From Podarcis cretensis (taxonomy: Eukaryota), in assembly GCA_951804945.1 (NCBI GenBank), contig OX638155.1, positions 48,546,001 through 48,610,000 of the forward strand: a stretch of 64,000 nucleotides of DNA, in the 5' to 3' direction. Made by a program: the position numbers and the translations under genes. This document shows, piece after piece, positions 8,876-53,384 of this stretch. Below the pieces are notes generated by a model, which saw only the letters and a program-made list of their open reading frames with translations, did no database searches and had not been told where the DNA came from. Every line of letters begins with the position of its first letter. The first letter of the stretch is position 1.

Positions 8876-9037
8876 CAAAGGAGACAACTTCTAGGGGACC
8901 TTTGCCCCCCCCCAATAAAATATTTGAAGTGACTGGGCCTCTCCAAAGTTGATGGGAATTGCCATTCAAATGGTGTGTGTTTGATTGAATATGCAGGCTT
9001 ATCTGCTCCCCATATTTTATGCCAGTTGGCACCCCTG
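8876..9037 (-). mobile_element. hAT-type MITE (caggggtgccaact TIR family)
   Basis: Termini caaaggagacaact / agttggcacccctg with an imperfect 8-bp TSD. Homologous to 16157-16685 and to 41371/44497. Confidence 0.7.
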
Positions 9038-14621: not shown

Positions 14622-16069
14622 TATGGGGGTGAAGGGGAAGGTTGTTTGTCAGTTCTCTGACTTCCCAGTGATTCACAAATTACTTTGTGTCTTGGTGTGC
14701 TCATCTATGTTTGTACTCCTGATGTAACACAGATATGTATGATACTTGGAGAACATGCTGAGGTCCATGGCTAGTGAGTGGGGCCTGATGAACTTTATGA
14801 CACACATTTTAAGGGCTACTGCTACATTATTGTGGCAGATACTAAGGATCATATACTTAAGAGGTTTAAAGTACATATCCAGAATGGTAAAGAGATTCAT
14901 GTGACAGGAACACTGTGTTACCTACAGAGGCTAAAGCCCTCAGAGAGCTGTCTGGAACAGCAATAGACACAAGGATTTATGACAAGGAACAGCAATTGCA
15001 ATATCTAGTGCTAAACATTTAATCTAAGGTTACAGTTTTTACTTCGGATCAGAGCTGAAGTCAGCAGAATTAAATCTTCAAGTGCATTTCAGCAACCCTA
15101 AATCCTTCGGATACTGTTAACAGTGGCAGACTTCCAAAACACATTTGTTTAATAAGACAGTAAAATATAAAGTTATCTTCCTCAAGGAGGGGGGTGGGGA
15201 GAGGCCTGATGGGGGAATGAGAAAAAGAAAACGCCACCAAACTGTGTTCATCACATTTGGGCCTTTCTTGCATTTATTTCTACCACCCCCCTCAATTCTT
15301 TGTTCTTAACATGTTTTTCCTTCTTTGATAAATCAGAGAGAGATATTTTATGAGGTAAGAATGACTTTCCCTTTCTTTGTTTTTCCTTGTAGGTTGGAAG
15401 AGGATAAGAATTTGCCAGTCGCTAGGTAGCCAATTGTCCCCAGGCTATCAAAAGGGATTCAGCAGCTGTTACCTTCTTTTTCTTGCTTAACATAACTTTT
15501 TGTTCACCTGCAGCTAAAGCAAATTTATGCGGAGCATACTGGGATGTTGTTCAAGTCCCCAAGGCAACTCTATTAGCTTTCCCAAGAGCTCCATTAAATG
15601 CTTATTAAAGCAAACAAACAACAAAAAAGAAGAAATAACTTTCAGATAATGGTTCAGCATTAAACCTGTAAAAGCATGGGAAGACAGAGGAATGGCCAGA
15701 AATGTCATCCTTAAGAATCCCTTTTGTGTAGCAAAATTACAGCAGGCATAGCAAGGGTGATCACCCACTGTTTAGCTAGCCCTGCAGGATGTAACGGGAT
15801 GTAAAGGACTGAGCATCTTTGATTGCTCAGCTTTTGAGGACCTGGCTTGACCCATGGATGGCCAAAGAGAGTAATTGTTTTTTTAAGTTTTATGCCCTTG
15901 GAGTTTTTTGTGTGAGATACAGAGAGAGAGAGCCTCTGCATCTTGTGTTTAAGAGCGAACCTGTAAACCATATGTTCTAGCAACGGAAGTGATAGTGGGC
16001 TATGATATCCAGGAGACCAGGAAGATACAGAACAAATCCTTCTTCAGCCAGAGACCTTTTGTTTAACAC

Positions 16070-16156
16070 TGTGGCAGTTGCTTTCTCAGCCTAACCTACC
16101 TCATGGGGTTGTTATGAGGAGAAAATGGATGGAGAAACCTAGTACATTGCCCTGAG
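16070..16156 (+). mobile_element. Squam3 (MIR-derived) SINE 3' part, interrupted by the MITE at 16157
   Basis: tctcagcctaacctacctcatggggttgttatgaggagaaaatgg; homologous to the minus copy at 39705-39923. Confidence 0.75.
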
Positions 16157-16554
16157 TAGGGGTGCCAACTTGAATAAAATATGAGGGGGCCAGGTAAGTA
16201 ACGCCCAGCATAATAGTGTTGAAATTGCAGTGTCCCAAGCACAGCGGAATGATGAGGAGTACGTGCCACATACTCTATATTACTTTATTTACACTTCAAA
16301 GCTGGTAGATTACAGAAAAACATCTTGCCTCTGCCGGAGCAGAGAAAGCATCCTCTCTCCTCTGAAGCACGGAGAGAAACACAGTGTGAACAGTGAAAAA
16401 CAGGAAACCAGTGTACGTCACATCCAGTCTCCTTTCCCGTGGGAAAACCCAACAGCACAGACTGTGGAATGTAAACACCTGTCTCGTGACAAGCACTTCG
16501 CTGCACAGTGAAGAGAGCAGAAACCAACAAATAGATCACATGATGCGGCACACG

Positions 16555-16585
<31 letters not shown>

Positions 16586-16685
16586 CATTTGAATGGCAAT
16601 GCCCATCAACTTTGCAGGGCCCACCCCCTTGTATATTTTATTGGGAGGACAAAGGCACCTCAATCACTAGGAGTTGGCTCCTATG
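16157..16685 (+). mobile_element. hAT-type MITE containing a solo LTR and a (CA)n tract
   Basis: TIRs taggggtgccaact / agttggctcctatg and 8-bp TSD gccctgag/gtcctgag. Confidence 0.8.
16217..16529 (-). mobile_element. Solo LTR, 313 bp
   Basis: TGTTG...CAACA termini, perfect 5-bp TSD aatag (16212-16216 and 16530-16534), and AATAAA on the minus strand. The segment is absent from sister MITE copies. Confidence 0.8.
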
Positions 16686-17559
16686 GTCCTGAGTCACTCT
16701 GATAATGAGAAAGATAAAGTCCCACTTTTTACTTTGTGATAAGGTATTAAGCAAATCACTGTTCTGTCCTTGTCTATCTAGAATATACAAGACTCCACCC
16801 TAATTTTGTTGGGGGGGAAGCAGTTTGCAAATGAAAAGTGCTATGTATATTGGGGGGGGGTTGCATTGGCAGTTAGCCTTCCCTTACTGCTGCAATCCTA
16901 TACGCAGTTCTCTGGGGTGAAAGCTCTACTGAACCAGGCTCAGCATCACCATTCTTTCTCCAGCAATTTTCATGGCAGATACTTCCAGTGAATGCTGAGA
17001 ATTACTGCAAGCCAGGGTGGGCAGGTGTTGTTGGCAACAGCCCTCTAACACCACTCACGTTCTCCTCGCCCCAAGAGCTGGTCCAGCATCTGGTTGTTTA
17101 TATTGGCATCTCTCTCTCCCTGTCATCAGCAAAGCTTAATTTGTAAGGTAAAATGTCTGGAATGAGAGTGAACACATTATTGCAACCCCTTCATTAATCT
17201 TTGGAGGAAAATCACTTTGCATGTGCTCAGAGACATTCCATTTCATTATTATTGTGACAGCAGAAGCTTGCCTTCTTAAGCAGATATATCATTGTCCAAG
17301 CTGATCCACGTTCTGGCTTTCCTTGGACAGATGCTTTAGATTCTATGCATTATATGCAATGCAAATGCATGAACATAAGGCTGGGTGAATGGGATTACTA
17401 TGATCAGATTTGCTAAAATGTTGATGGCTATGACTTTTAGTTCCGTCTGTGGGCTCTTTTGCATTCTTCAAACAGCAGACAAAAGAGTCTGGCTAAGTAG
17501 GGTAGCTTTGCTCTGTGTTGCACTTAAAGTGTTACTGTTCTTCTTTTATTCCTCTTAAA

Positions 17560-17695
17560 TAGGCATAGGCAAACTCCGCCCTCCAGATGTTTTGGGACTA
17601 CAATTCCCATTATCCCTGACCACTGGTTCTGTTAGCTAGGGATGATGGGAGTTGTAGTCCCAAAACATCTGGAGGGCCGAGTTTGCCTATGCCTG
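17560..17695. mobile_element. Palindromic hAT MITE, young
   Basis: ~57-bp near-perfect inverted arms and perfect 8-bp TSD ctcttaaa. Confidence 0.92.
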
Positions 17696-18903
17696 CTCTT
17701 AAAGATTAAAAGGCAACTGAAATGTTTCCAGAATCCCATTTATTTGTGAAGCCTAATTATGACTCTCAAATATTGGTTGTGCGAACCAGAAAAATAAGGT
17801 GGCAAAGCAACGCCCCATCAAGTACAAAACCACAAATTTTGATTTTAAGTGTTCAAAATTCCATTGCATCTATAACAAAGGGATAAGTATCCATCTCCCC
17901 CCACCAGATTTTAATAGCCTTAATTTGTAATAGGCTCACAGAATATATGGGTGAACCCCCCCTTTATTCTTGCTGTTAAATGATACAGATCTTATCAATC
18001 AATCTTCATAATAAAGATTGGCTATGGAGAGGGAAAGCTAAGCAAGGGGCAAGGTGGCAATTTGATTTGATCCACCGCTTTCAAAATAAAGATTGCTTGG
18101 CCTTGTTTTTACTGAGGTAGCACACAGGCAGATTTCCTGGAGTCACCATCATTAGCAGTTAATAGGGGCTGCTGCAAGTTTCAAACCGGAGTACATTTGT
18201 GTTTCTTTCCCTGCCGGGCCCCTGAGACCTTGGCCATTGGACAGCAGTGTCGAGAGCCCCTTAACTGCTGCTTAGGTAGACCTCCTAATATAATTTCGCT
18301 TTTCACAGTTCTTGTAAAACACACATCGCTCCTTCCCTGCTGCGACTCTGCAGATTTCTGAATGATAACAAGGCAGAGAATTTACAATTGACTCGAGGTG
18401 CTTCTTTGCTATGGAACCCCCTCCTGCCTTGTCAAATGGACTTGAAAAACAAGTCCCTTTCTCCGGAGTTGTCATGCCCGACTTGACGAGGCATAAAATA
18501 TCCGGGTGCATCCTTTTTCCTACTGTAGCTTGTACTACAACATATTTCTGCTCAACTTTTATCTAGGCATGACATTTGCGATTCACATTGATTCCCCCCC
18601 TTGTCCCTGTATGCCTTGCGATGCCTTCCATAGCTGAATAGGTCTTTGGCATCCTCCCCACCTGTTGCAGCCCTTTGAGCAGCTGTTGGGCCTCAGGACC
18701 AGTAACCGTTTAGTGTCTGGCAAGGACCATGGTCAGTACCCATATTTACATTATCCTCTGTCGTTTTAGTGTAGGCTTGAGTTTATTTTGTTTATTGGTG
18801 TTTAAATTGGTTTTAGAAATATGTACCACTGCATTCTAGTTTGTTGTACCTTGTGGTTCCATGCTGAAGGGTGGTGTAGAAATATCTAAGTAACAAAATA
18901 AAT

Positions 18904-19247
18904 GGTAAAAAAGGGACCCTGACCATTAGGTCCAGTCGTGACTGACTCTGGGGTTGCGGTGCTCATCTTGCTTTATTGGCCAAGGGAGCCGGCGTACAGC
19001 TTCCGGGTCATGTGGCCAGCATGACTAAGCCACTTCTGGCGAACCAGAGCAGCACACGGAAACGCCGTTTACCTTCCCGTGGTACCTATTTATCTACTTG
19101 CACTTTGACATGCTTTCGAACTGCTAGGTTGGCAGAAGCATGGACTGAGCAACGGGAGCTCACCCCGTCGCAGGGATTCAAACCGCCGACCTTCTGATCG
19201 GCAAGTCCTAGGCTCTGTGGTTTAACCCACAGTGCCACCCTCATCCC
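18904..19247 (-). mobile_element. Sauria SINE (older subfamily)
   Basis: Reverse complement of the 10734 type. TSD-like aataaatgg on both sides. Confidence 0.92.
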
Positions 19248-19263
19248 TAGAATAAATGGATTC

Positions 19264-19445
19264 AGGGCAATTCCTCATCTGCACATTTAAAGCGGTATTA
19301 TGCCACTTTAAACAGCCAAAGAATTCTGGGACCTGTAGTTTGCCAAGGGTGTTGATAGCTGGCAGGACACCCACTCACAGCGCTACAATTCCCAGAGTGC
19401 CCTGGAAAGAGGGATTGATTGTTAAACTACTCTGGGAATGATGCA
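19264..19445. mobile_element. Dispersed lizard non-autonomous DNA-transposon-like repeat (family uncertain, possibly PIF/Harbinger)
   Basis: aagaattctgggacctgtagttt...ctacaattcccagag motifs recur at ~35860-36066 and ~49545-49715. Confidence 0.5.
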
Positions 19446-21177
19446 TGCCTTACTCCCTCAGCTGAGATCCTTTTACTAAGGAAAGTATTGCCATGCCCTC
19501 ACTGTGGAATGGCATGCCCTCACTGGGGATGGGATGATACCTTGGGGTATATGTGGGGCACATTCTCCGAGCTCAGCTGAATAACCTCCCACCACTGTCA
19601 ACCTGCCACTGACTCTCTCCTTCACCTGGGATCTTCTCGGCTTCAGGAGAGGGGCTAAAATGGCTAACCCTAGAGCAAACTCCATGGAACCAGAAAGAGT
19701 CGGTGGCAGTTGGAGCGGAATAATAAATACAAGGGCTGTATACATGTTAGTGTTTACTCTGGCCCTAGTGCACTTCCACTGCTGGGGTTTATGGTAAAGT
19801 ACTTGTGATGTTAGCCACTATCCATCTGTATCTTGAAGTTTCTTGAGAAATACTTCTGTTCAATGCATTTCCCCCTCAAACCTGCTTCCATCTGATTGAA
19901 AATGCAACCCACAGTTAAGTTGAGGTGTGTATAGTTCAGACAGCTGTTGCTCATGCTCAGATGACAGCTTCACTGAATAAGAATGGGGAGACAAATAAGG
20001 TACTGTGCGCTGAGTGGAGACTCCCTGCCCTTTTTCCTAGTGTGTACATTGATGCAAAAATGTGACTTGAAACGCTGCAGCGAAAAACAACCTTGCTGGA
20101 TTTTAAGCCACTAATGTGTATGTAGCTCAAAAGAGGACGAGAAACTGGGCTTGGAGGACATGGGCCTCAAGGCAGGGCATGAAGTAAGGGGCAGGTAGGT
20201 CCATACATGACCCACCTGCTTTATGAATTGTGGATTCACAAGGATTGGTTCCTGCTAGCTCTTATTCAAGCACCGATTCAAAATTTAAAAGGGCTGGATG
20301 CTGCAGTCAAGTATGATAACTCTGCATCCAAGAATACATTATTTACTTGTGATCCCAGAGGTTGGTTATTTCAAGCAGAGAACCACTTTGTACTTAAAGA
20401 GGGCCACTAAATAACCCAAGATCAGTCGACCTAAGATCGATCTAGACTAGACTATGCTGAACAGACTTCTGTCTTTTATGACGCTGTGTCTCCACTGGTT
20501 TTAGCACAGTTACCCATTGCTGCAAGAGAACGGCGTTAAGCCAAGGCATTGTAATGTTAAAAGTACAGCACTGCTTCAGCTGAATGAAGTTATGGTCAGC
20601 CTCTCAATATTACGTTGTATGAGGCTAATTGCACTTCCATACATTTGTCCTGTGACGTTTTACATTTTGGTGACAATAATTCAGTAAAATTAGAGGACAC
20701 TATTATAGTTTTCAAATAGAGTCCTACCAATATATTCACAACACAGGTCTTCCCACCCCCCAGCCTGTTCTACAAATGAATTCACATTATTGTGAATGGG
20801 AAGAATGATCAAACCAAAAGCAATTCATGTTGTTTTACATGACAATGGTTTTTGATGGATTGATTTAGATTTATTGTACACATTAGACAAGGGTGGAGAA
20901 CATTTTCCAGCTGGAGGATCTTATGCCCTTCTGTGCAACCTTTTGAGGGTTATGTGCCAGAAGAAAATAGTGGGTGGAGCAAAGAATGTACATTGTACAC
21001 TAGGCTAGCATCTGTTACCATACAGATATATCTTAGTTTGATGGCTTAAAATAAAATTAGTAATTTTTTAATATCATTTTTTAAAATTTCATTAAAAAAC
21101 AACCAAAAAGTTTAATTTATAGACAACAATAGACTGAATTAAGATTGCTGTTTATTTCATTCCAGAGAAGACTGGAA

Positions 21178-24314: not shown

Positions 24315-24446
24315 NNNNNNNNNNNNNNNNNNNNNNNNNNNNNNNNNNNNNNNNNNNNNNNNNNNNNNNNNNNNNNNNNNNNNNNNNNNNNNNNNNNNNN
24401 NNNNNNNNNNNNNNNNNNNNNNNNNNNNNNNNNNNNNNNNNNNNNN
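24315..24446. other. Assembly gap (N run)
   Basis: 132 Ns. Confidence 1.
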
Positions 24447-28575: not shown

Positions 28576-28957
28576 AGAATCATAGTATTGTAGAGTTGGA
28601 ATGGACCCTGAGCAGTGGCGTAGCGTGGGTTGTCAGCACCCGGGGCAAGGCAAGTAATTTGCGCCCCCTAACCCGTGGATTTGGGCCCCCTAACCCATGG
28701 ATTTGCCCTAACCCCAGATGTTGCGCCCGGTGCGGCCGGGCCCCCCTGCACCCCCCACGCTATGCCACTGACCCTGAGGGTCATCTAGTCCAACCCCCTG
28801 CAAGGCAGGAATCTCAACTAAAGCATCCCTGACAGATGCCCATCCAACCTCTGCTTAAAAACCTCCAAGGAAGGAGAGCCCACCACCTTCTGAGGGAGTC
28901 CAGTTCACTGTCAAACTCTTCTTACTGTCAGAAAGTACTTCCTAATGTTTAGTCGGG
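28576..28957 (-). mobile_element. CR1 3' end, interrupted by a hAT MITE
   Basis: tagaatcatag tail; homologous to the reverse complement of 43300-43518. Confidence 0.85.
28613..28770. mobile_element. hAT MITE
   Basis: TIRs cagtggcgtagcgtggg and perfect 8-bp TSD accctgag. Confidence 0.92.
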
Positions 28958-39923: not shown

Positions 39924-41450
39924 AAAGCAATAGAGAGGGCTCAAAGTATTTTGCAGCTTGAAGTGAAGGAGAAGGTCTAAACCCCCTTACTCCATGCACA
40001 GAAGGACCTTAGCAGAAGCACTTAAATCTTATGACACTTCAAGGCTGTTGCTATCTGGGGGCTGGGATTCAATCCTGGCAAATTCAGATTGCAGAGTTAA
40101 AGTTGATTCAGTACTCTTGCGGAACAAAGCCGCTTCCGCAAAATGCTAGCCTTCTTGCAATAGGGAAAGTGACAGAAAAATATACACTGGAAAGTGTGGG
40201 ATAACACTCGCTTGGTGCGGCAGCATCTAACCTTCCCACAAACAAATCAGAATGAATCCTTAGTAAATAGCTGACATCATTAACTACCCTGCAAACTTTG
40301 TGCTAACAAATCAGGATAGATGCACAATAAACATGGCATCTGCAACTAGGAATGAGCAAATCTGCCAATCTCTGTTCTCTCCGCATCTCATTATCCAAAG
40401 TGTATGGAGGGCACCATGTTGGCAAAGATTGCATTACAATATGAGAGTGCCTAAACGGGGAAATAATCTGCAGATGAGCCCCAAGCAAAGATCAGATTCC
40501 ATCTGTTAGCTTCTTATTTTAAAGTTTTACTACCACTGAAAAGTAAAGCATTTTTCTATCACCATTCCCCCACCCCCCCACCATTTCCTAGGGCAACTAC
40601 ATGCCTCTTGTAACTCCAGGGCCTTTCGTGGATCTATCAATGATTGACACGAGGTGTAAACGATGGGAGAAATAAACGTGGCTGTCTTTGTGGAAGTTAT
40701 ATATCCTGCCATATCTTGCACTGCTGATTTCATTTTTGCTAAAAGCTGATACAAGGCAATTGTAGCACAGTAGGTAACAGCCTTCATCTTGGCACCAGCC
40801 ATCAGTATCAAATGTTTCTCTCTGCCCCTTGCTAGTCATACCACTTCGCTCATTCCAGAAGAATTACCCTCCCTCTTGCTAGGGTGCTACGCTGTTCCAT
40901 ATGGGCTACCTAACAAAGATCACAAAATGTACTGCTCAGCATTAAAACAGCAGTTCACTCTGCTATCGCCTGACCTTTGCAACCCCAATCAGAAATGAAG
41001 TGTTATGCTGTGAACAACACTGCTGGCTAAAAGCCATAGTACAGGTATTTTGTTCTTAGTTTCAAAAATCCTTCCTTAACTGTATGCCTCAGAGAAGAGA
41101 TGAGGGCAAAGTAGTTTTGCAATGGCTAAATACTCTTCCATTTCTTCACTAAAGAAGTCGGGGTGTAGGAAGCCTTATGGGGATTGGATCTAGGCAGATA
41201 GCAGGCAGAAAGTTGGCAACTGGAAGGCCAGATCCAATTAGACAGACCCTAGAATCTATCCACACTACCAGCAGTATCAGGCAATAGTATTACTGAGATG
41301 CTGGGTTCAGCGGGTACTTTGTGCATGCCCTGAAACACCTTGCCTCCTGGAGCTTTGCCATATAGGTGGCCAGGAGTGGCAACTTGAATAAAATACTGGA
41401 GTGGGTGGGTCAAGGTAAACTCCGCTCTGCATAATTGATCACCTGACCGG

Positions 41451-43439
41451 GTGCACCTACACCATTTGAGTGCAGCCCCCTCAAAAGCACAACTTCAGGC
41501 AATACCAATGAGACGGAAACATGGAAGGTGCCTAAAGAAGCCAGGGTGGCTATCTAAAGAACTTTTAACTGAGTTAAGATTAAAAAAGGATGTGTACAAA
41601 AAATGGAAAAGGGGGGAAACCACCAAAGAGGAATTCAAACAAATAGCCAGCACGTGTAGACACAAAGTCAGAAAAGCTAAAGCACAGAATGAACTCAGGC
41701 TTGCTAGAGAGGTTAAAAGCAACAAAAAAGGCTTTTATGGGTATGTTCGTAGCAAAAGGAAGAACAAAGAAACAGTGGGGTCACTCAGAGGAGAATATGG
41801 TGAAATGCAAACAGGGGACACAGAAAGGGCTGAACTCCTCAATGCCTTCTTTGCCTCAGTCTTCTCCGATAAAGAAAACAATGCCCGACCTGAAGAATTT
41901 GGAGCAAATGATTCAGCAGAGGAAACACAGCCCAGAATAACTAAGGAGATAGTACAAGAATACTTGGCTAGTTTAGATGTAATCAAGTCTCCAGGGCCAG
42001 ATGAACTGCATCCAAGAGTATTAAAAGAACTGGCAGATGTGATCTCAGAACCACTGGCAGTCATCTTTGAGAATTCCTGGAGAACAGGCGAAGTCCCGGC
42101 AGACTGGAGGAGGGCAAATGTTGTCCCTATTTTCAAAAAGGGGAAAAGAGAGGACCCAAATAATTACCGCCCAGTCAGTCTGACATCAATACCAGGGAAG
42201 ATTCTGGAGCAGATAATTAAGCAAACAGTCTGTGAGCACCTAGAAAGGAATGCTGTGATCACCAATAATCAGCATGGATTTCTGAAAAATAAGTCATGTC
42301 AGACTAACCTGATCTCGTTTTTTGACAGAATTACAAGCCTGGTAGATGAAGGGAACACAGTGGATGTAGCCTACCTTGATTTCAGCAAGGCATTTGACAA
42401 GGTGCCCCATGATATTCTTGTAAAGAAGCTGGTAAAATGTGGTCTTGACTATGCTACCACTCAGTGGATTTGTAACTGGCTGACTGACCGAATCCAAAGG
42501 GTGCTCATAAATGGTTCCTCTTCATCCTGGAGAAGAGTGACTAGTGGGGTGCCACAGGGTTCTGTCTTGGGCCCGGTCTTATTCAACATCTTTATCAACG
42601 ACTTGGATGATGGACTCAAGGGCATCCTGATCAAATTTGCAGATGACACCAAACTGGGAGGGGTGGCTAACACCCCAGAGGACAGGATCACACTTCAAAA
42701 CGACCTTGACAGATTAGAGAACTGGGCCAAAACAAACAAGATGAATTTTAACAGGGAGAAATGTAAAGTATTGCACGTGGGCAAAAAAAATGAGAGGCAC
42801 AAATACAAGATGAGTGACACCTGGCTTGAGAGCAGTACATGTGAAAAGGATCTAGGAGTCTTGGTTGACCACAAACTTGACATGAGCCAACAGTGTGACG
42901 CGGCAGCTAAAAAAGCCAATGCAATTCTGGGCTGCATCAATAGGAGTATAGCATCTAGATCAAGGGAAGTAATAGTGCCACTGTATTCTGCTCTGGTCAG
43001 ACCTCACCTGGAGTACTGTGTCCAGTTCTGGGCACCACAGTTCAAGAAGGACACGGACAAACTGGAACGTGTCCAGAGGAGGGCAACCAAAATGGTCAAA
43101 GGCCTGGAAACGATGCCTTATGAGGAACGGCTAAGGGAGCTGGACATGTTTAGCCTGGAGAAGAGGAGGTTAAGGGGTGATATGATAGCCATGTTCAAAT
43201 ATATAAAAGGATGTCACATAGAGGAGGGAGAAAGGTTGTTTTCTGCTGCTCCAGAGAAGCGGACACGGAGCAATGGTTCCAAACTACAAGAAAGAAGATT
43301 CCACCTAAACATTAGGAAGAACTTCCTGACAGTAAGAGCTGTTCAACAGTGGAATTTGCTGCCAAGGAGTGTGGTGGAGTCTCCTTCTTTGGAGGTCTTT
43401 AAGCAGAGGCTTGACAACCATATGTCAGGAGTGCTCTGA
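41451..43439 (+). CDS. CR1 ORF2 reverse transcriptase plus C-terminal domain (N-truncated, no endonuclease domain; first ~11 codons are from the flanking MITE)
   Basis: Motifs [63 protein letters not shown]. Confidence 0.93.
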
Positions 43440-43518
43440 TGGTGTTTCCTGCTTGGCAGGGAGTTAGACCCGATGGCCCTTGTGGTCTCTTCCAACTCTA
43501 TGATTCTATGATTCTATG
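41483..43518 (+). mobile_element. CR1 LINE, 5'-truncated, young
   Basis: Uninterrupted ORF2 part, CR1 3' UTR and (ATTCTATG)n tail. Confidence 0.98.
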
Positions 43519-43728
43519 AAATAGCTCACATGAATATGGCTAGCAGTCTCTGGACTAGCACATGAAGTCTCGGTAAATACTCTGAGCCAGCACTCATCAT
43601 AAAAAATTACCAGGAATAGCAGAACAGCTTGGCCACCTATAAATGTTGAGCACCTGTGCACAGCATGAAAAGTCTGATCATCAAGATAGAATCAAAGAAT
43701 AAGAACCACTGACCAGGGTCATGTGCAG

Positions 43729-43917
43729 TACAGGCAACTCCCTGTTTCCATGGGGGTTGCGTTCTGGGTCAAAGCATGTGTTGGCAGAGCAGGCATAAGC
43801 TTGCCCTGCCCCGTTACACCCCATCCCACCCCACTCTTCCCTCTTCCAGGTTTAAAAGGACTCACATGTCAGTGGTCATACACCAATTGGACACACCTAA
43901 ACTCGTCGCTGTCTGTA
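43729..43917. mobile_element. Decayed Tc1/mariner-type MITE
   Basis: TA-flanked termini tacaggcaac / gctgtctgta. Confidence 0.45.
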
Positions 43918-44714
43918 CTCTAAAAAGAAAATGAATGACAGTAGGCTTCAGGGAGATGGGGAAATACTATTGATCTCCATTCAAACAATATGTAAGTAAT
44001 TAAAACTTATAAAGAAAATTTCCAAAATGGCAGTTTTTTTTAAAAAAATAAAGAAATCGTGCCACAGTTTCCTGCTTAGTGGGATCCCATGACCACATTT
44101 CATTCATAAAGCTCAAAGGATGTTTCTCCTTTTTGGATCTTTCATAAGGTGTTTACTAAAGAAATAGTGGCGTCAATATTGCCTCAGTTACATATATGTT
44201 ATCTTTCCTTTTCATCAGTTTTGGAAAGTATGAGTCAGATTCTTGGCATAACTGCTTGGTCTACCATAGTGAAACAGGAGCTTGTGGGCAAATCACCCAC
44301 CTCGTTATAGCATCCAGTGCTCATTTTGGTCAAAAGGAATTCCAACCACTGTCCCTATATGAAGAGTGGGTGGAATAAAGTAAACTTTATTGCATACAAA
44401 GGATATGCAACATGCCTAACAGTTCCTATGTATTATGATTCTAAATATATTATTGGAGGACTGAAGGGACCTTGGCCCCTAGGAGTTGGCTCCTTTGCAG
44501 GTGGCTGTGCAATGAGTATAGGTTTCTGCGAGCAGAGTTTGGGAATAAGTTTTACTTCAACTAACCATTTTCCTCTTCAGTAACGTTCAGGCAGTTCAAG
44601 CCACATAGTCCTTTTACTCTTTGATGTCATTTTATCACTGGTAAGAACAACAAGTATATTTTCTTTGAAGCTAAGTGGGACTCAATGGTTTTTATTTATT
44701 TATTATCATGAGTA

Positions 44715-44845
44715 CATTTATTTATATACCACCTTTTCCTCCAAAGAGCTCAAGGTGGTCACATGACTATCCAATTCCCTGTTTTATTATCACAACAACC
44801 CAGTAGGATAGGTTGAGAGACAGTGAATGACCTGAGTAACTGAGG
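44715..44845 (-). mobile_element. Squam3 SINE 3' part
   Basis: Homologous to 39705-39840. Confidence 0.7.
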
Positions 44846-46167
44846 TGTACAGAGTAACCTCCCACAACTCTGGAGAAATTATATCAAAATATAAATTCTC
44901 TCTGGTGTGTAACGTGATTAAGGGCATGAGAAAGCTTGGAAACAATATATGTATACTCAGTATTTGGAAACTAAGTAGGATGAGACACTCTATTAGCAGA
45001 GGCAGATAAGAGATAAATTCTAGAGTCTGATTATAGACCAATTCCAGAATGAAGTCTAAGGATGGAACGGAGAAAATCTGACATTGATTTGGGAAATCCA
45101 GGTGAATGTACCAGGGGCCACAGGGCCCTTTGACTACAGCTGTGATAGGAACAATCGGAGTGGGAAGAGCAGCCCCCATTTCACTTCTGCTTTTCTGTTT
45201 TCCACTACATTATTTATTACACACCCCTTATTTGTCAGAACCTTTTCAAACTTAATTACACAAAGCTCCTGTAGAAAATAATGAGTGCTAAAGTGAGGGA
45301 TACTTCTAGGCAAAACCACCATGAGTACCAGCTGCCCCTGTGCTAGTAATACAAAGTGACAACAATTAATAATCATTAATATTAAAATAATGCAATTAAC
45401 TTCAGTGTGGGAGACCCAGTTGATGCTGCAAGATAATGATGAACAAACACTGCTTATGGTTATTTATTCTTGACAGAGCACATACGCATGGAATCCTGCG
45501 CTCAGTTGCACATGCAGATATCCTAGCATTCTAAATGAGATGTGCTCATATGGAACTTGGGTGCTGGGATGCAGCCCAATGCTTGGTGTTTGAATGTGGC
45601 ACGGACCACTGCATGGCTGCAAATTTTACGGCACCTCTGCACATCCCAATGATTCACTTAACAGTGGGAATAGGGAGCTGGGGAAGGAAAGCAGGGTAGA
45701 AAGACAGAACTGTAAGCGTAGGCAAGATGGGAGCAGAAGATAACTGCCAGGGACCAGAAAAGGACATGGCAAGCCCCCGTCTTCTTCCATCCATTTTTTT
45801 TTTTGGGGGGGGGCACCAATACAGCTCCTTGCCAAGGGCACAGGGGACCCTACATCCGCTTCTGCATATATCGAGAATGTATCAACCACACTAACAATGA
45901 GGTCAGTGTTTTGCTTCTCTGCCAAGTGTCTTTGCTTGTCTGGGAGTTTTGAGTCAGATCAAGGCTGTATCATCTGAGGCATGTTTAAAGGCTATGGTTC
46001 ACAGACTCTGTATGTGCACTTCTCACCCACAAAGGTTGCTTTCCTGTTTGCTAATATCCAAATGCAAAAGCATCTAAACAGACATATGCAGGAGATGAAT
46101 ACCCATCCCACCCTGTCTCTGAAAGTTTATGTAGTGCAGATATTCTGCTACTTAACCTGGCCAAATA

Positions 46168-48768: not shown

Positions 48769-49020
48769 NNNNNNNNNNNNNNNNNNNNNNNNNNNNNNNN
48801 NNNNNNNNNNNNNNNNNNNNNNNNNNNNNNNNNNNNNNNNNNNNNNNNNNNNNNNNNNNNNNNNNNNNNNNNNNNNNNNNNNNNNNNNNNNNNNNNNNNN
48901 NNNNNNNNNNNNNNNNNNNNNNNNNNNNNNNNNNNNNNNNNNNNNNNNNNNNNNNNNNNNNNNNNNNNNNNNNNNNNNNNNNNNNNNNNNNNNNNNNNNN
49001 NNNNNNNNNNNNNNNNNNNN
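48769..49020. other. Assembly gap (N run)
   Basis: 252 Ns. Confidence 1.
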
Positions 49021-52740: not shown

Positions 52741-53384
52741 GTTGCACTTTGGAGTTACCCTTTGTCCAATGTCAGCCCTCTTTAGTTTCACAGCGATGGG
52801 TGAATAATTCTGGCTCAACATCTGTTTTTATCCACAGCATCGTAGGAGGAAAAATACATGAAGCATTATCACTGTTTTATACAATGGAAGCTCCTGAAAG
52901 ATTTCGGACAGTGTTTATAGAAGCTGCAGTAGTTGTAGTCACCTGTACAAAGGGGTGGCTCTGGGTATGAATGTTCCTCCATATCAAATTGAAGTGGATC
53001 ATTAAGGCAGATAAAAGCACCACAATGTAGATTTGCCTCCAGTTCAAGCAATGTTATATGTATTATTCTCACTGGCCTGGGTGACTGCATTTGACACTGA
53101 AAGTCAACCAAGGAAATCAGTTTTTTGTCTCCCATTCAAAAAAGTTTTCTTCCTCTCTCTCATTTCCTGCAGAATATTTCAGTGCTTTCATGATTCTGAA
53201 GTCAAAGTATAGAAGAAACAGCACATGGCAGAAGAGTAACTGTCACCAACTTATTTAATGGTAAGAATTTAGGTAGCAGCCCACTGTTTGGATTGATCCT
53301 ATTAATTTTATTGTTGTGTCGTTGAGTGGAATTATCAACATAGCCTTCAATATCTAGAGAGAGAAATGTGAACAACTAAATTAA

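Follow-up and report, generated by a model that had tools for sequence, protein, structure and literature searches.

CR1 is the chief LINE of reptiles and birds, and strict recognition of its own 3' end is the accepted reason for the small number of retrogenes in their genomes. Among the described systems to which the present locus can be compared is 3' transduction by L1 (Moran 1999; Goodier 2000; Pickeral 2000; as cited in PMC8232201 and PMC5470649). Another is ectopic copying during repair. SDSA and long-tract gene conversion copy non-homologous ectopic DNA (PMC4888836; Nassif et al. 1994, as cited there), and one-ended invasion with copying of non-homologous DNA from ectopic sites is among the established repair outcomes (PMC4888836). 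Most knowledge of one-ended repair comes from breaks induced in flies, yeast and cultured cells. Chimeric retrocopies, such as U6-L1 and the chimera at the origin of PittSINE (PMC5729268), arise when a LINE reverse transcriptase switches templates and have a piece of LINE tail as their 3' end, with the sequence of another RNA upstream. CR1 itself is thought to require both a hairpin and a microsatellite at the end of its RNA (PMC8665684; PMC5470649). UnaL2, a related strict LINE, recopies its terminal repeat by telomerase-like template slippage at initiation (PMC1636434).

The locus described here lies in a 64 kb stretch of Podarcis cretensis DNA, referred to as the window (GCA_951804945.1, OX638155.1, 48,546,001-48,610,000 forward strand). 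It consists of the 5' part of a MITE, a young CR1, 915 bp of non-CR1 DNA, one CR1 tail octamer and the 3' part of the MITE, all enclosed by an 8-bp duplication (Table 1). Moved flanking DNA is seldom seen tied to a 'strict' LINE, as it is here. As in L1 3' transduction, unique DNA that at its origin directly follows a progenitor LINE adjoins a LINE 3' end within one target site, and a donor locus with the same LINE/flank junction exists, the donor CR1 being seen there as 23-24 nt of tail. Unlike L1, CR1 is 'strict', depending on a hairpin and octamer tail of its own rather than on poly(A); the segment ends in an octamer that the donor lacks, not in a poly(A) signal and tail; and the relatives suggest that the LINE was resident before the flank came. 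The likeness to one-ended repair with end joining would lie in the homology (CR1) on one side only, copying that runs into the donor flank, a join without homology on the other side and an unchanged donor. It would differ from the known cases in having happened in the germline, from one dispersed LINE copy to another, after a break within a microsatellite tail. Compared with chimeric retrocopies, the arrangement would be the same, but just 8 nt of tail would precede the switch and the second template would be a CR1-plus-flank transcript.

Table 1. Features of the CR1-interrupted MITE, in positions of the window
Feature	Position	Strand	Basis
Left copy of the MITE 8-bp target-site duplication, TAGGTGGC	41363..41370	.	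7/8 match to CAGGTGGC
hAT-like MITE 5' part, terminal repeat caggagtggcaac...	41371..41482	+	Alignment to family copies 8876-9037 (minus) and 16157-16685
5'-truncated CR1 LINE: open ORF2 remnant, 3' UTR and (atgattct)2.5 tail	41483..43519	+	RVT_1, tail comparison, CR1 homology start
915-bp copy of unique donor-locus DNA	43520..44434	+	Contig coverage in four runs, exactly 43520(43496)-44434
Single CR1 tail octamer atgattct, absent from the donor locus	44435..44442	+	Contig ends at 44434; octamer rarity
MITE 3' part (aaatatattattgg...agttggctcctttg)	44443..44497	+	Alignment to family copies
Right copy of the MITE 8-bp target-site duplication, CAGGTGGC	44498..44505	.	7/8 match to TAGGTGGC

The window was compared with contigs from four public runs, F, A, G and B. 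The flanks of F match the window and B is the most distant, flank divergence being 0.06% in F, 0.9% in A, 1.4% in G and 1.9% in B. Such contigs show presence rather than absence, and their depth is unreliable.

The initial annotation described a split MITE with a CR1 and extra DNA inside it, bracketed as a whole by an 8-bp duplication. Both the structure and the duplication are borne out, the junctions lying a few bases away: where the CR1 had been given as 41483-43518, followed by 924 bp from 43519, it ends at 43519, and the extra DNA before the MITE resumes is 43520-44442. The region is free of N, the N runs of the window being at 24315-24446 and 48769-49020. The MITE has hAT-type ends (caggagtggcaac / gttggctcctttg), with terminal inverted repeats and no coding capacity. 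Each of the window's three family copies is flanked by an 8-bp duplication matching at 6-7 of 8 positions, those of the other two being GCCCTGAG/GTCCTGAG and TTGACCAC/CTGACCCC. These two copies, previously listed as sisters of about 170 bp, both align as MITE relatives, but the one at 16157 measures 529 bp.

The 5' part of the MITE stops at ...ccccctc, where intact relatives read ...cttcAAAtattttattgg and the consensus from reads is ccccctcaaatattttt. The aaa(a) at 41483-41486 is compatible with both MITE and CR1, generic CR1 contigs agree with the window from 41483 onward, and in F and A the contigs of the flank reach as far as 41512 (41482 + 30). The duplication or microhomology at the split is therefore put at 0-3 nt (aaa) from these alignments, and the MITE halves join up with only aaa in common.

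The CR1 copy begins within ORF2, a 5' truncation with a short or no target-site duplication (0-3 nt). Its ORF2 remnant is an open frame of about 650-662 aa with a stop at 43437-43439, and contains an RVT_1 domain (E 9.4e-35, residues 218-434 of the 650-aa frame). The tail finishes with ...ctatgattctatgattctatga, a motif that is the octamer microsatellite (ATTCTRTG)n of PMC8665684. Small hairpins are predicted at the CR1 3' end, which folds no better than shuffles (z +1.06). At the end of the 915-bp segment, the folding energy, as a test for a hairpin, was likewise not significant (z -0.94).

Within the 64-kb window no second copy of the extra segment was found, and it has no CR1 protein similarity at E up to 10. 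An old decayed element had been noted in it; old decayed repeats are indeed present, including a low-copy repeat at 43740-44053. The AATAAA at 44374 to which attention had been drawn is also there, but singles out nothing because there is another AATAAA at 44047 and an ATTAAA at 43999. With these further signals and no A-run at the end, the poly(A)-signal argument was dropped. CR1-like strings picked out by eye (44066-44100 on the plus strand, and atagaatcaaagaat at 43686-43700, resembling a reversed tail) did not outscore shuffles and were also set aside.

A second locus carrying the 915 bp was found in the contigs of all four runs. The initial annotation had proposed looking for a second copy of the segment directly behind another CR1, and this is what was found, with the junction at the same nucleotide and 23-24 nt of tail identifying the donor CR1. 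The contigs of F, A and G start in the CR1 tail and join it to the segment at an identical position. In F the contig comprises exactly 43496-44434, and since it is unbranched at 43519/43520 and branched at 44434/44435, both copies in F have a common tail/segment junction and differ solely downstream, from 44434/44435. The A contig likewise ends at 44434, marking a branch. In G a 1845-nt contig begins in the tail at 43497 and continues beyond 44434, unbranched, with 905 nt unlike the window, while the flank contig reaches 41511 and so crosses the MITE/CR1 junction. In B the segment is in a 3807-nt contig without CR1, preceded by 780 unlike nt upstream of 43520 and followed by 2115 after 44434, and the MITE appears uninterrupted. 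Long unique contigs, and about single-copy depth in B and G, speak against the segment being a multi-copy TE, which the initial annotation had named as a finding that would count against its proposal.

Between the F contig and the window, 8 of 939 letters differ in the segment but 1 of 1745 letters in the flanks (p = 0.0014), and at four segment positions the window stands alone against all four organisms. As these four differences are common to all of them, the window segment is a diverged second copy and not an assembly error. The two copies differ by 0.85% in F, less than the 1.43% that separates the flanks of F and G, which speaks for two-step copying, though weakly, as 8 differences compare with about 13 expected. 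Taking the flank depth as one, the segment stands at 1.09 in G, 2.5 in F and 1.45 in A. From the missing branch and the contig depth, G looks to carry the segment once, outside the MITE. The contigs suggest a nested series, in which B lacks the two CR1s, G has them both, and A and F carry the copy of the flank in addition; the order of flank divergence agrees with it.

The octamer ATGATTCT occurs only six times on both strands of the 64 kb, with four sites in CR1 tails, one at 44435 and one at 53190. Because it is this rare and four sites are in CR1 tails, its placement at the extreme end of the insert is not by chance. The extra DNA had been said to end in a CR1-tail motif; the motif is there, but the match of every contig halts at 44434 and the octamer at 44435-44442 is without counterpart at the donor. 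It is either a leftover of the resident CR1 tail or the first letters of a cDNA. The octamer being missing from the donor, where all four contigs stop short of it, reverse transcription was not begun on a tail-like motif within the flank, as had been supposed. Another CR1, at 28576, ends in ...tatgattct beside its flank. The donor homology itself ends in ttcctatgtatt, which is tail-like (p about 0.014).

The reading that best fits the demonstrated anatomy, the donor with the same tail/flank junction, the end of homology at 44434 and the CR1-free segment in B is two-step copying from the donor CR1 by one-ended homologous repair and end joining. It is put forward tentatively, with a probability of about 0.4. 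Because the series runs from B to G to A and F, it suggests that the CR1 came first and the flank later. In the first step, after the B lineage had split off, a 5'-truncated CR1 would have entered the MITE by target-primed reverse transcription, leaving a resident tail that ended ...atgattct against the 3' part of the MITE, and a second CR1 would have inserted at the donor locus. In the second step, after the split of the G lineage, the microsatellite tail of the resident CR1 would have broken one octamer from its end. The left broken end may then have invaded the near-identical donor CR1 and been extended through the donor tail and 915 bp of flank, the new strand being freed and end-joined, with no homology, to the far side of the break. 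The terminal octamer would simply be the remainder of the resident tail, which would have ended like the CR1 at 28576. We infer this order from the seemingly single copy in G; that the second step went through DNA rather than RNA is a further inference. The pattern of one-sided homology and an apparently homology-free join is made equally well by a cDNA route, and, against repair specifically, the tail-like donor end ttcctatgtatt suits RNA priming or realignment equally well.

That a single read-through CR1 transcript brought both parts was the proposal of the initial annotation. The segment does lie behind a CR1 at the donor, but one event is not favoured because G has the MITE/CR1 junction while its segment looks single-copy and is elsewhere. 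In an amended form of this CR1 3' transduction, a donor transcript would read through the tail into the flank, and the reverse transcriptase would copy one octamer at the nicked MITE, resume on the RNA from 44434, run back across flank, tail and CR1 body, and stop at 41483, giving the 5' truncation. The one clean target site, duplicated over 0-3 nt and showing aaa microhomology where the 5' end joins, is as in LINE insertions, and the donor has the same tail/flank junction. The final octamer of the insert sits where CR1 cDNA synthesis normally starts, slippage of the UnaL2 type could supply it in its absence from the flank, and the donor homology stops at a tail-like motif (p about 0.014). Against this, G has the MITE/CR1 junction with only one continuation of the segment (depth ratio 1.09), and an octamer not templated by the donor flank needs an extra template jump from an internal position. 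The supposed need of CR1 for a hairpin and microsatellite at its RNA end also counts against it. So does the lack of any report of CR1 3' transduction in the literature searched, a weak negative with subscription journals mostly outside coverage. This course of events is considered unlikely, if still to be reckoned with.

The flank might instead have arrived second, through RNA, as an 'orphan' transduction. Donor read-through RNA would be reverse-transcribed from a nick in the resident CR1 tail, and the cDNA, ending in CR1, joined upstream through homology with the resident CR1. The series from B to G to A and F and the donor junction fit this as they fit repair. CR1 tails resemble the CR1 priming site and are therefore plausible targets, and template switching by the CR1 enzyme has been proposed in birds (PMC5729268). 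However, the cDNA must begin at RNA position 44434 without a tail, priming on the tail-like motif would leave letters of the target where the donor's ttcctatgtatt is seen, and there is no poly(A), splicing or other trace of RNA origin, which makes it distinctly improbable. Taken more broadly, that CR1 reverse-transcribed a read-through transcript, moving the 915 bp of 3' flank with the element or as an orphan piece, is possible at somewhat under even chances.

Two unrelated insertions at one point, in which the 915 bp would be a separate mobile element that duplicated aaata on landing and had the CR1 land next to it, are very improbable. The initial annotation offered this as an alternative on account of aaata at 43519-43523 and 44443-44447, but the aata on the left is the donor's own DNA, so that aaata is not a duplication flanking the segment. 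Moreover, the segment is in long unique contigs (3.8 kb in B, 1.8 kb in G) at about single-copy depth, is joined to a CR1 tail at the identical nucleotide at the donor in F, A and G, and has no second copy in the window. On the evidence of the contigs it is neither a multi-copy element nor an independent insertion. An assembly artefact, in which reads of the donor locus were pasted into the tail of a plain CR1 insertion, is scarcely credible. It would suit the facts that no public contig shown spans 44435-44467 and that the contigs of F did not show the variant letters peculiar to the window, but pasted reads would match the donor, whereas 8 of 939 letters differ from the donor-type contig of the same species, four of them window-private. 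A second continuation would account for the F and A contigs ending exactly at 44434, and the right-hand join is away from any repeat boundary. Unequal crossing-over between two CR1s is rejected, both MITE halves and both flanks being retained.

This is a single locus, probably without function, and its value is mechanistic. The traceable donor and the apparent three-state series (no CR1, CR1 only, CR1 plus flank) make the route by which CR1 flanks move testable. If the flank moved as RNA, 3' transduction by a CR1 would be documented here for the first time, and the CR1 enzyme would be able to start or resume cDNA away from its recognition site after one octamer. If it moved by DNA repair, the locus would show cleanly, in nature, how LINE copies scattered through a genome can serve as homology anchors and so duplicate the unique DNA next to them.

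Direct reading of 41200–44700, with alignment of both MITE pieces to the relative at 8876–9037, confirms the layout claimed by the initial annotation, a hAT-like MITE split by a young, 5'-truncated CR1 and extra DNA, with the exact junctions shifted by a few bases. Uninterrupted MITE relatives read ...cttcAAAtattttattgg, so the duplication at the split is aaa at most. Each of the family's three copies in the window is flanked by an 8-bp duplication, which fits a hAT-type MITE. The relative at 16157–16685, previously given as about 170 bp, measures 529 bp and has the same ends, the 8-bp duplication GCCCTGAG/GTCCTGAG and about 360 bp of internal DNA with a (CA)n run at 16548–16585. This copy may represent a longer, non-autonomous variant within the family.

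Features of the split MITE locus, in window positions
Feature	Position	Sequence
MITE 5' part	41371–41482	ends ...ccccctc
aaa(a) compatible with both MITE and CR1	41483–41486	
CR1 3' end	43519	...ccaactctatgattctatgattctatga
DNA unlike CR1	43520–44442	
MITE 3' part	44443–44497	aaatatattattgg...gttggctcctttg
Brackets of the whole unit		TAGGTGGC (left), CAGGTGGC (right)

The resident CR1 is open from its truncation point to a stop at 43437–43439 (662 aa including read-in from the MITE), and this frame contains an RVT_1 domain (E 9.4e-35). Its tail is built from the octamer of amniote CR1s, ATTCTRTG (PMC8665684). Other CR1 ends in the window read ...tatgattct (28576) and ...attctgtga (50185) before the flank. 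Folding energy alone gave no support for a CR1 3' hairpin (z +1.06). The motif ATGATTCT occurs six times in the window, counting both strands: four times in CR1 tails, once as the final octamer of the extra DNA, and once at 53190, where the sole plus-strand occurrence beyond this locus could mark another CR1 tail.

No second copy of the extra DNA is present within the 64-kb window, and no CR1 protein similarity was found in it. The AATAAA at 44374, listed in the initial annotation, is not distinctive, with another at 44047 and ATTAAA at 43999. At 43686–43700, atagaatcaaagaat is the reverse complement of the CR1-like tail attctttgattctat, scoring not above shuffles; an old CR1-type element on the minus strand may end here.

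Twenty public sequencing runs, from six studies and several organisms, match the locus. Contigs of four runs, from organisms F, A, G and B, were placed on 40600–45300 at 90% likeness, and what follows holds among the matches listed. Divergence from the window in the flanks (F 0.06%, A 0.90%, G 1.43%, B 1.87%) indicates that F belongs to the species of the window and that B is the farthest from it. The sole flank difference of F is at 41480, three bases upstream of the CR1 junction (A in the contig, C in the window). In F, A and G the left-flank contig extends past the boundary between MITE and CR1, ending at 41512 in the first two and at 41511 in G. The left-flank contig of B departs from the window at 41472 and continues for 56 unlike letters, roughly the length, judged by length alone, for an uninterrupted, diverged MITE (about 65). 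In the right flank, 44682–44838 is a high-copy short repeat, with summed contig depth of about 4,000 in A and about 16,000–20,000 in each of the other three runs, adjacent depth being 25–116.

The 915-bp segment at 43520–44434 was copied from low-copy DNA at another locus. In F it forms a single 939-nt contig, exactly 43496–44434, which starts inside the CR1 tail, so that there is no branch where tail and segment meet, and stops at 44434, which indicates a branch at 44434/44435. Between this contig and the window there are 8 differences in 939 letters, against 1 in 1745 in the F flanks (p = 0.0014). Four of the eight (43853, 43910, 44171 and 44251) are common to all four organisms. The copy in the window is therefore a second one that has diverged, with the F contig representing the other; in F, each of the two is preceded by a CR1 tail. 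The contigs of A span 43499–44434, with breaks in between. A 1845-nt contig of G begins in the tail at 43497, matches to 44434 and continues with 905 letters unlike the window. The 3807-nt contig of B matches only 43520–44434, with unlike letters upstream (780) and downstream (2115) and no CR1 tail upstream of the segment. Donor-type copies carry lineage-specific deletions of 12 nt in A (43865) and 4 nt in B (43574). Within the segment, 43740–44053 is a repeat of low copy number that belongs to the donor flank (2–3 contigs per run, 3–6 times flank depth, all four organisms).

At the donor locus in F, A and G, the segment is thus immediately preceded by a CR1 tail, and tail and segment meet at the nucleotide where they also meet in the window; the donor CR1 is known here from its tail letters. 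A second copy behind another CR1, as the initial annotation proposed to look for, is therefore present, the contigs of all three starting in a CR1 tail. The donor CR1 is absent in B and so is itself young. The match ends at 44434 in every run, which means that the terminal octamer atgattct (44435–44442) does not come from the donor. No contig bridging 44435–44467 was found among the matches listed.

Three lines, each weak, favour two events. In G the CR1 is present in the MITE and the segment contig has one continuation, contigs proving presence and not absence. The segment/flank depth ratio is 1.09 in G, 2.5 in F and 1.45 in A, contig depth being an unreliable measure. At 0.85%, the difference between the two copies in F is smaller than the 1.43% by which the flanks of F and G diverge (8 differences, about 13 expected). 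Together with the divergence order these suggest a nested series, each line again weak: B with neither CR1, G with both but not the flank copy, and A and F with the flank copy too.

Two-step copying by DNA repair is the leading explanation, with a probability of about 0.4. The terminal octamer would be the end of the resident CR1's own tail, into which the donor flank would have been copied, anchored on the left by CR1 homology and sealed on the right without homology. One-ended invasion, synthesis past the homology and then end joining are known at the DNA level (PMC4888836), and would yield such a flank copy.

A single CR1 3' transduction by a read-through transcript, the reading of the initial annotation, is rather unlikely. 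Transduction is standard for L1 (PMC8232201, PMC5470649); CR1 is described as requiring its own hairpin and microsatellite (PMC8665684, PMC5729268, PMC5470649), and a literature search, thin for subscription journals, found no published CR1 case. A single event presupposes that G carries the segment at its MITE locus, and an enzyme laying one octamer before continuing on read-through RNA. The strict LINE UnaL2 is known to slip at initiation in the manner of telomerase (PMC1636434), and the donor homology ends in the tail-like ttcctatgtatt (p about 0.014), but equal or better tail-like sites occur within the segment and ttcctatgtatt suits end joining as much as priming. Of that reading, the copy of another CR1's flank stands; the octamer is not donor DNA, and the three lines point to two events.

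Lower again in probability is a two-step route in which a read-through transcript of the donor is copied into cDNA that then recombines with the resident CR1; its product would be identical to that of repair copying. All remaining explanations together hold only a small share. Assembly error is unlikely given the private letters in the window copy, the segment is not the multi-copy TE that the initial annotation named as a refutation, and independent insertion with an aaata duplication is ruled out because the left aata belongs to the donor. The observation as such is confirmed: the locus is a real, unusual case in which the 3' flank of one CR1 has been duplicated in association with another CR1.
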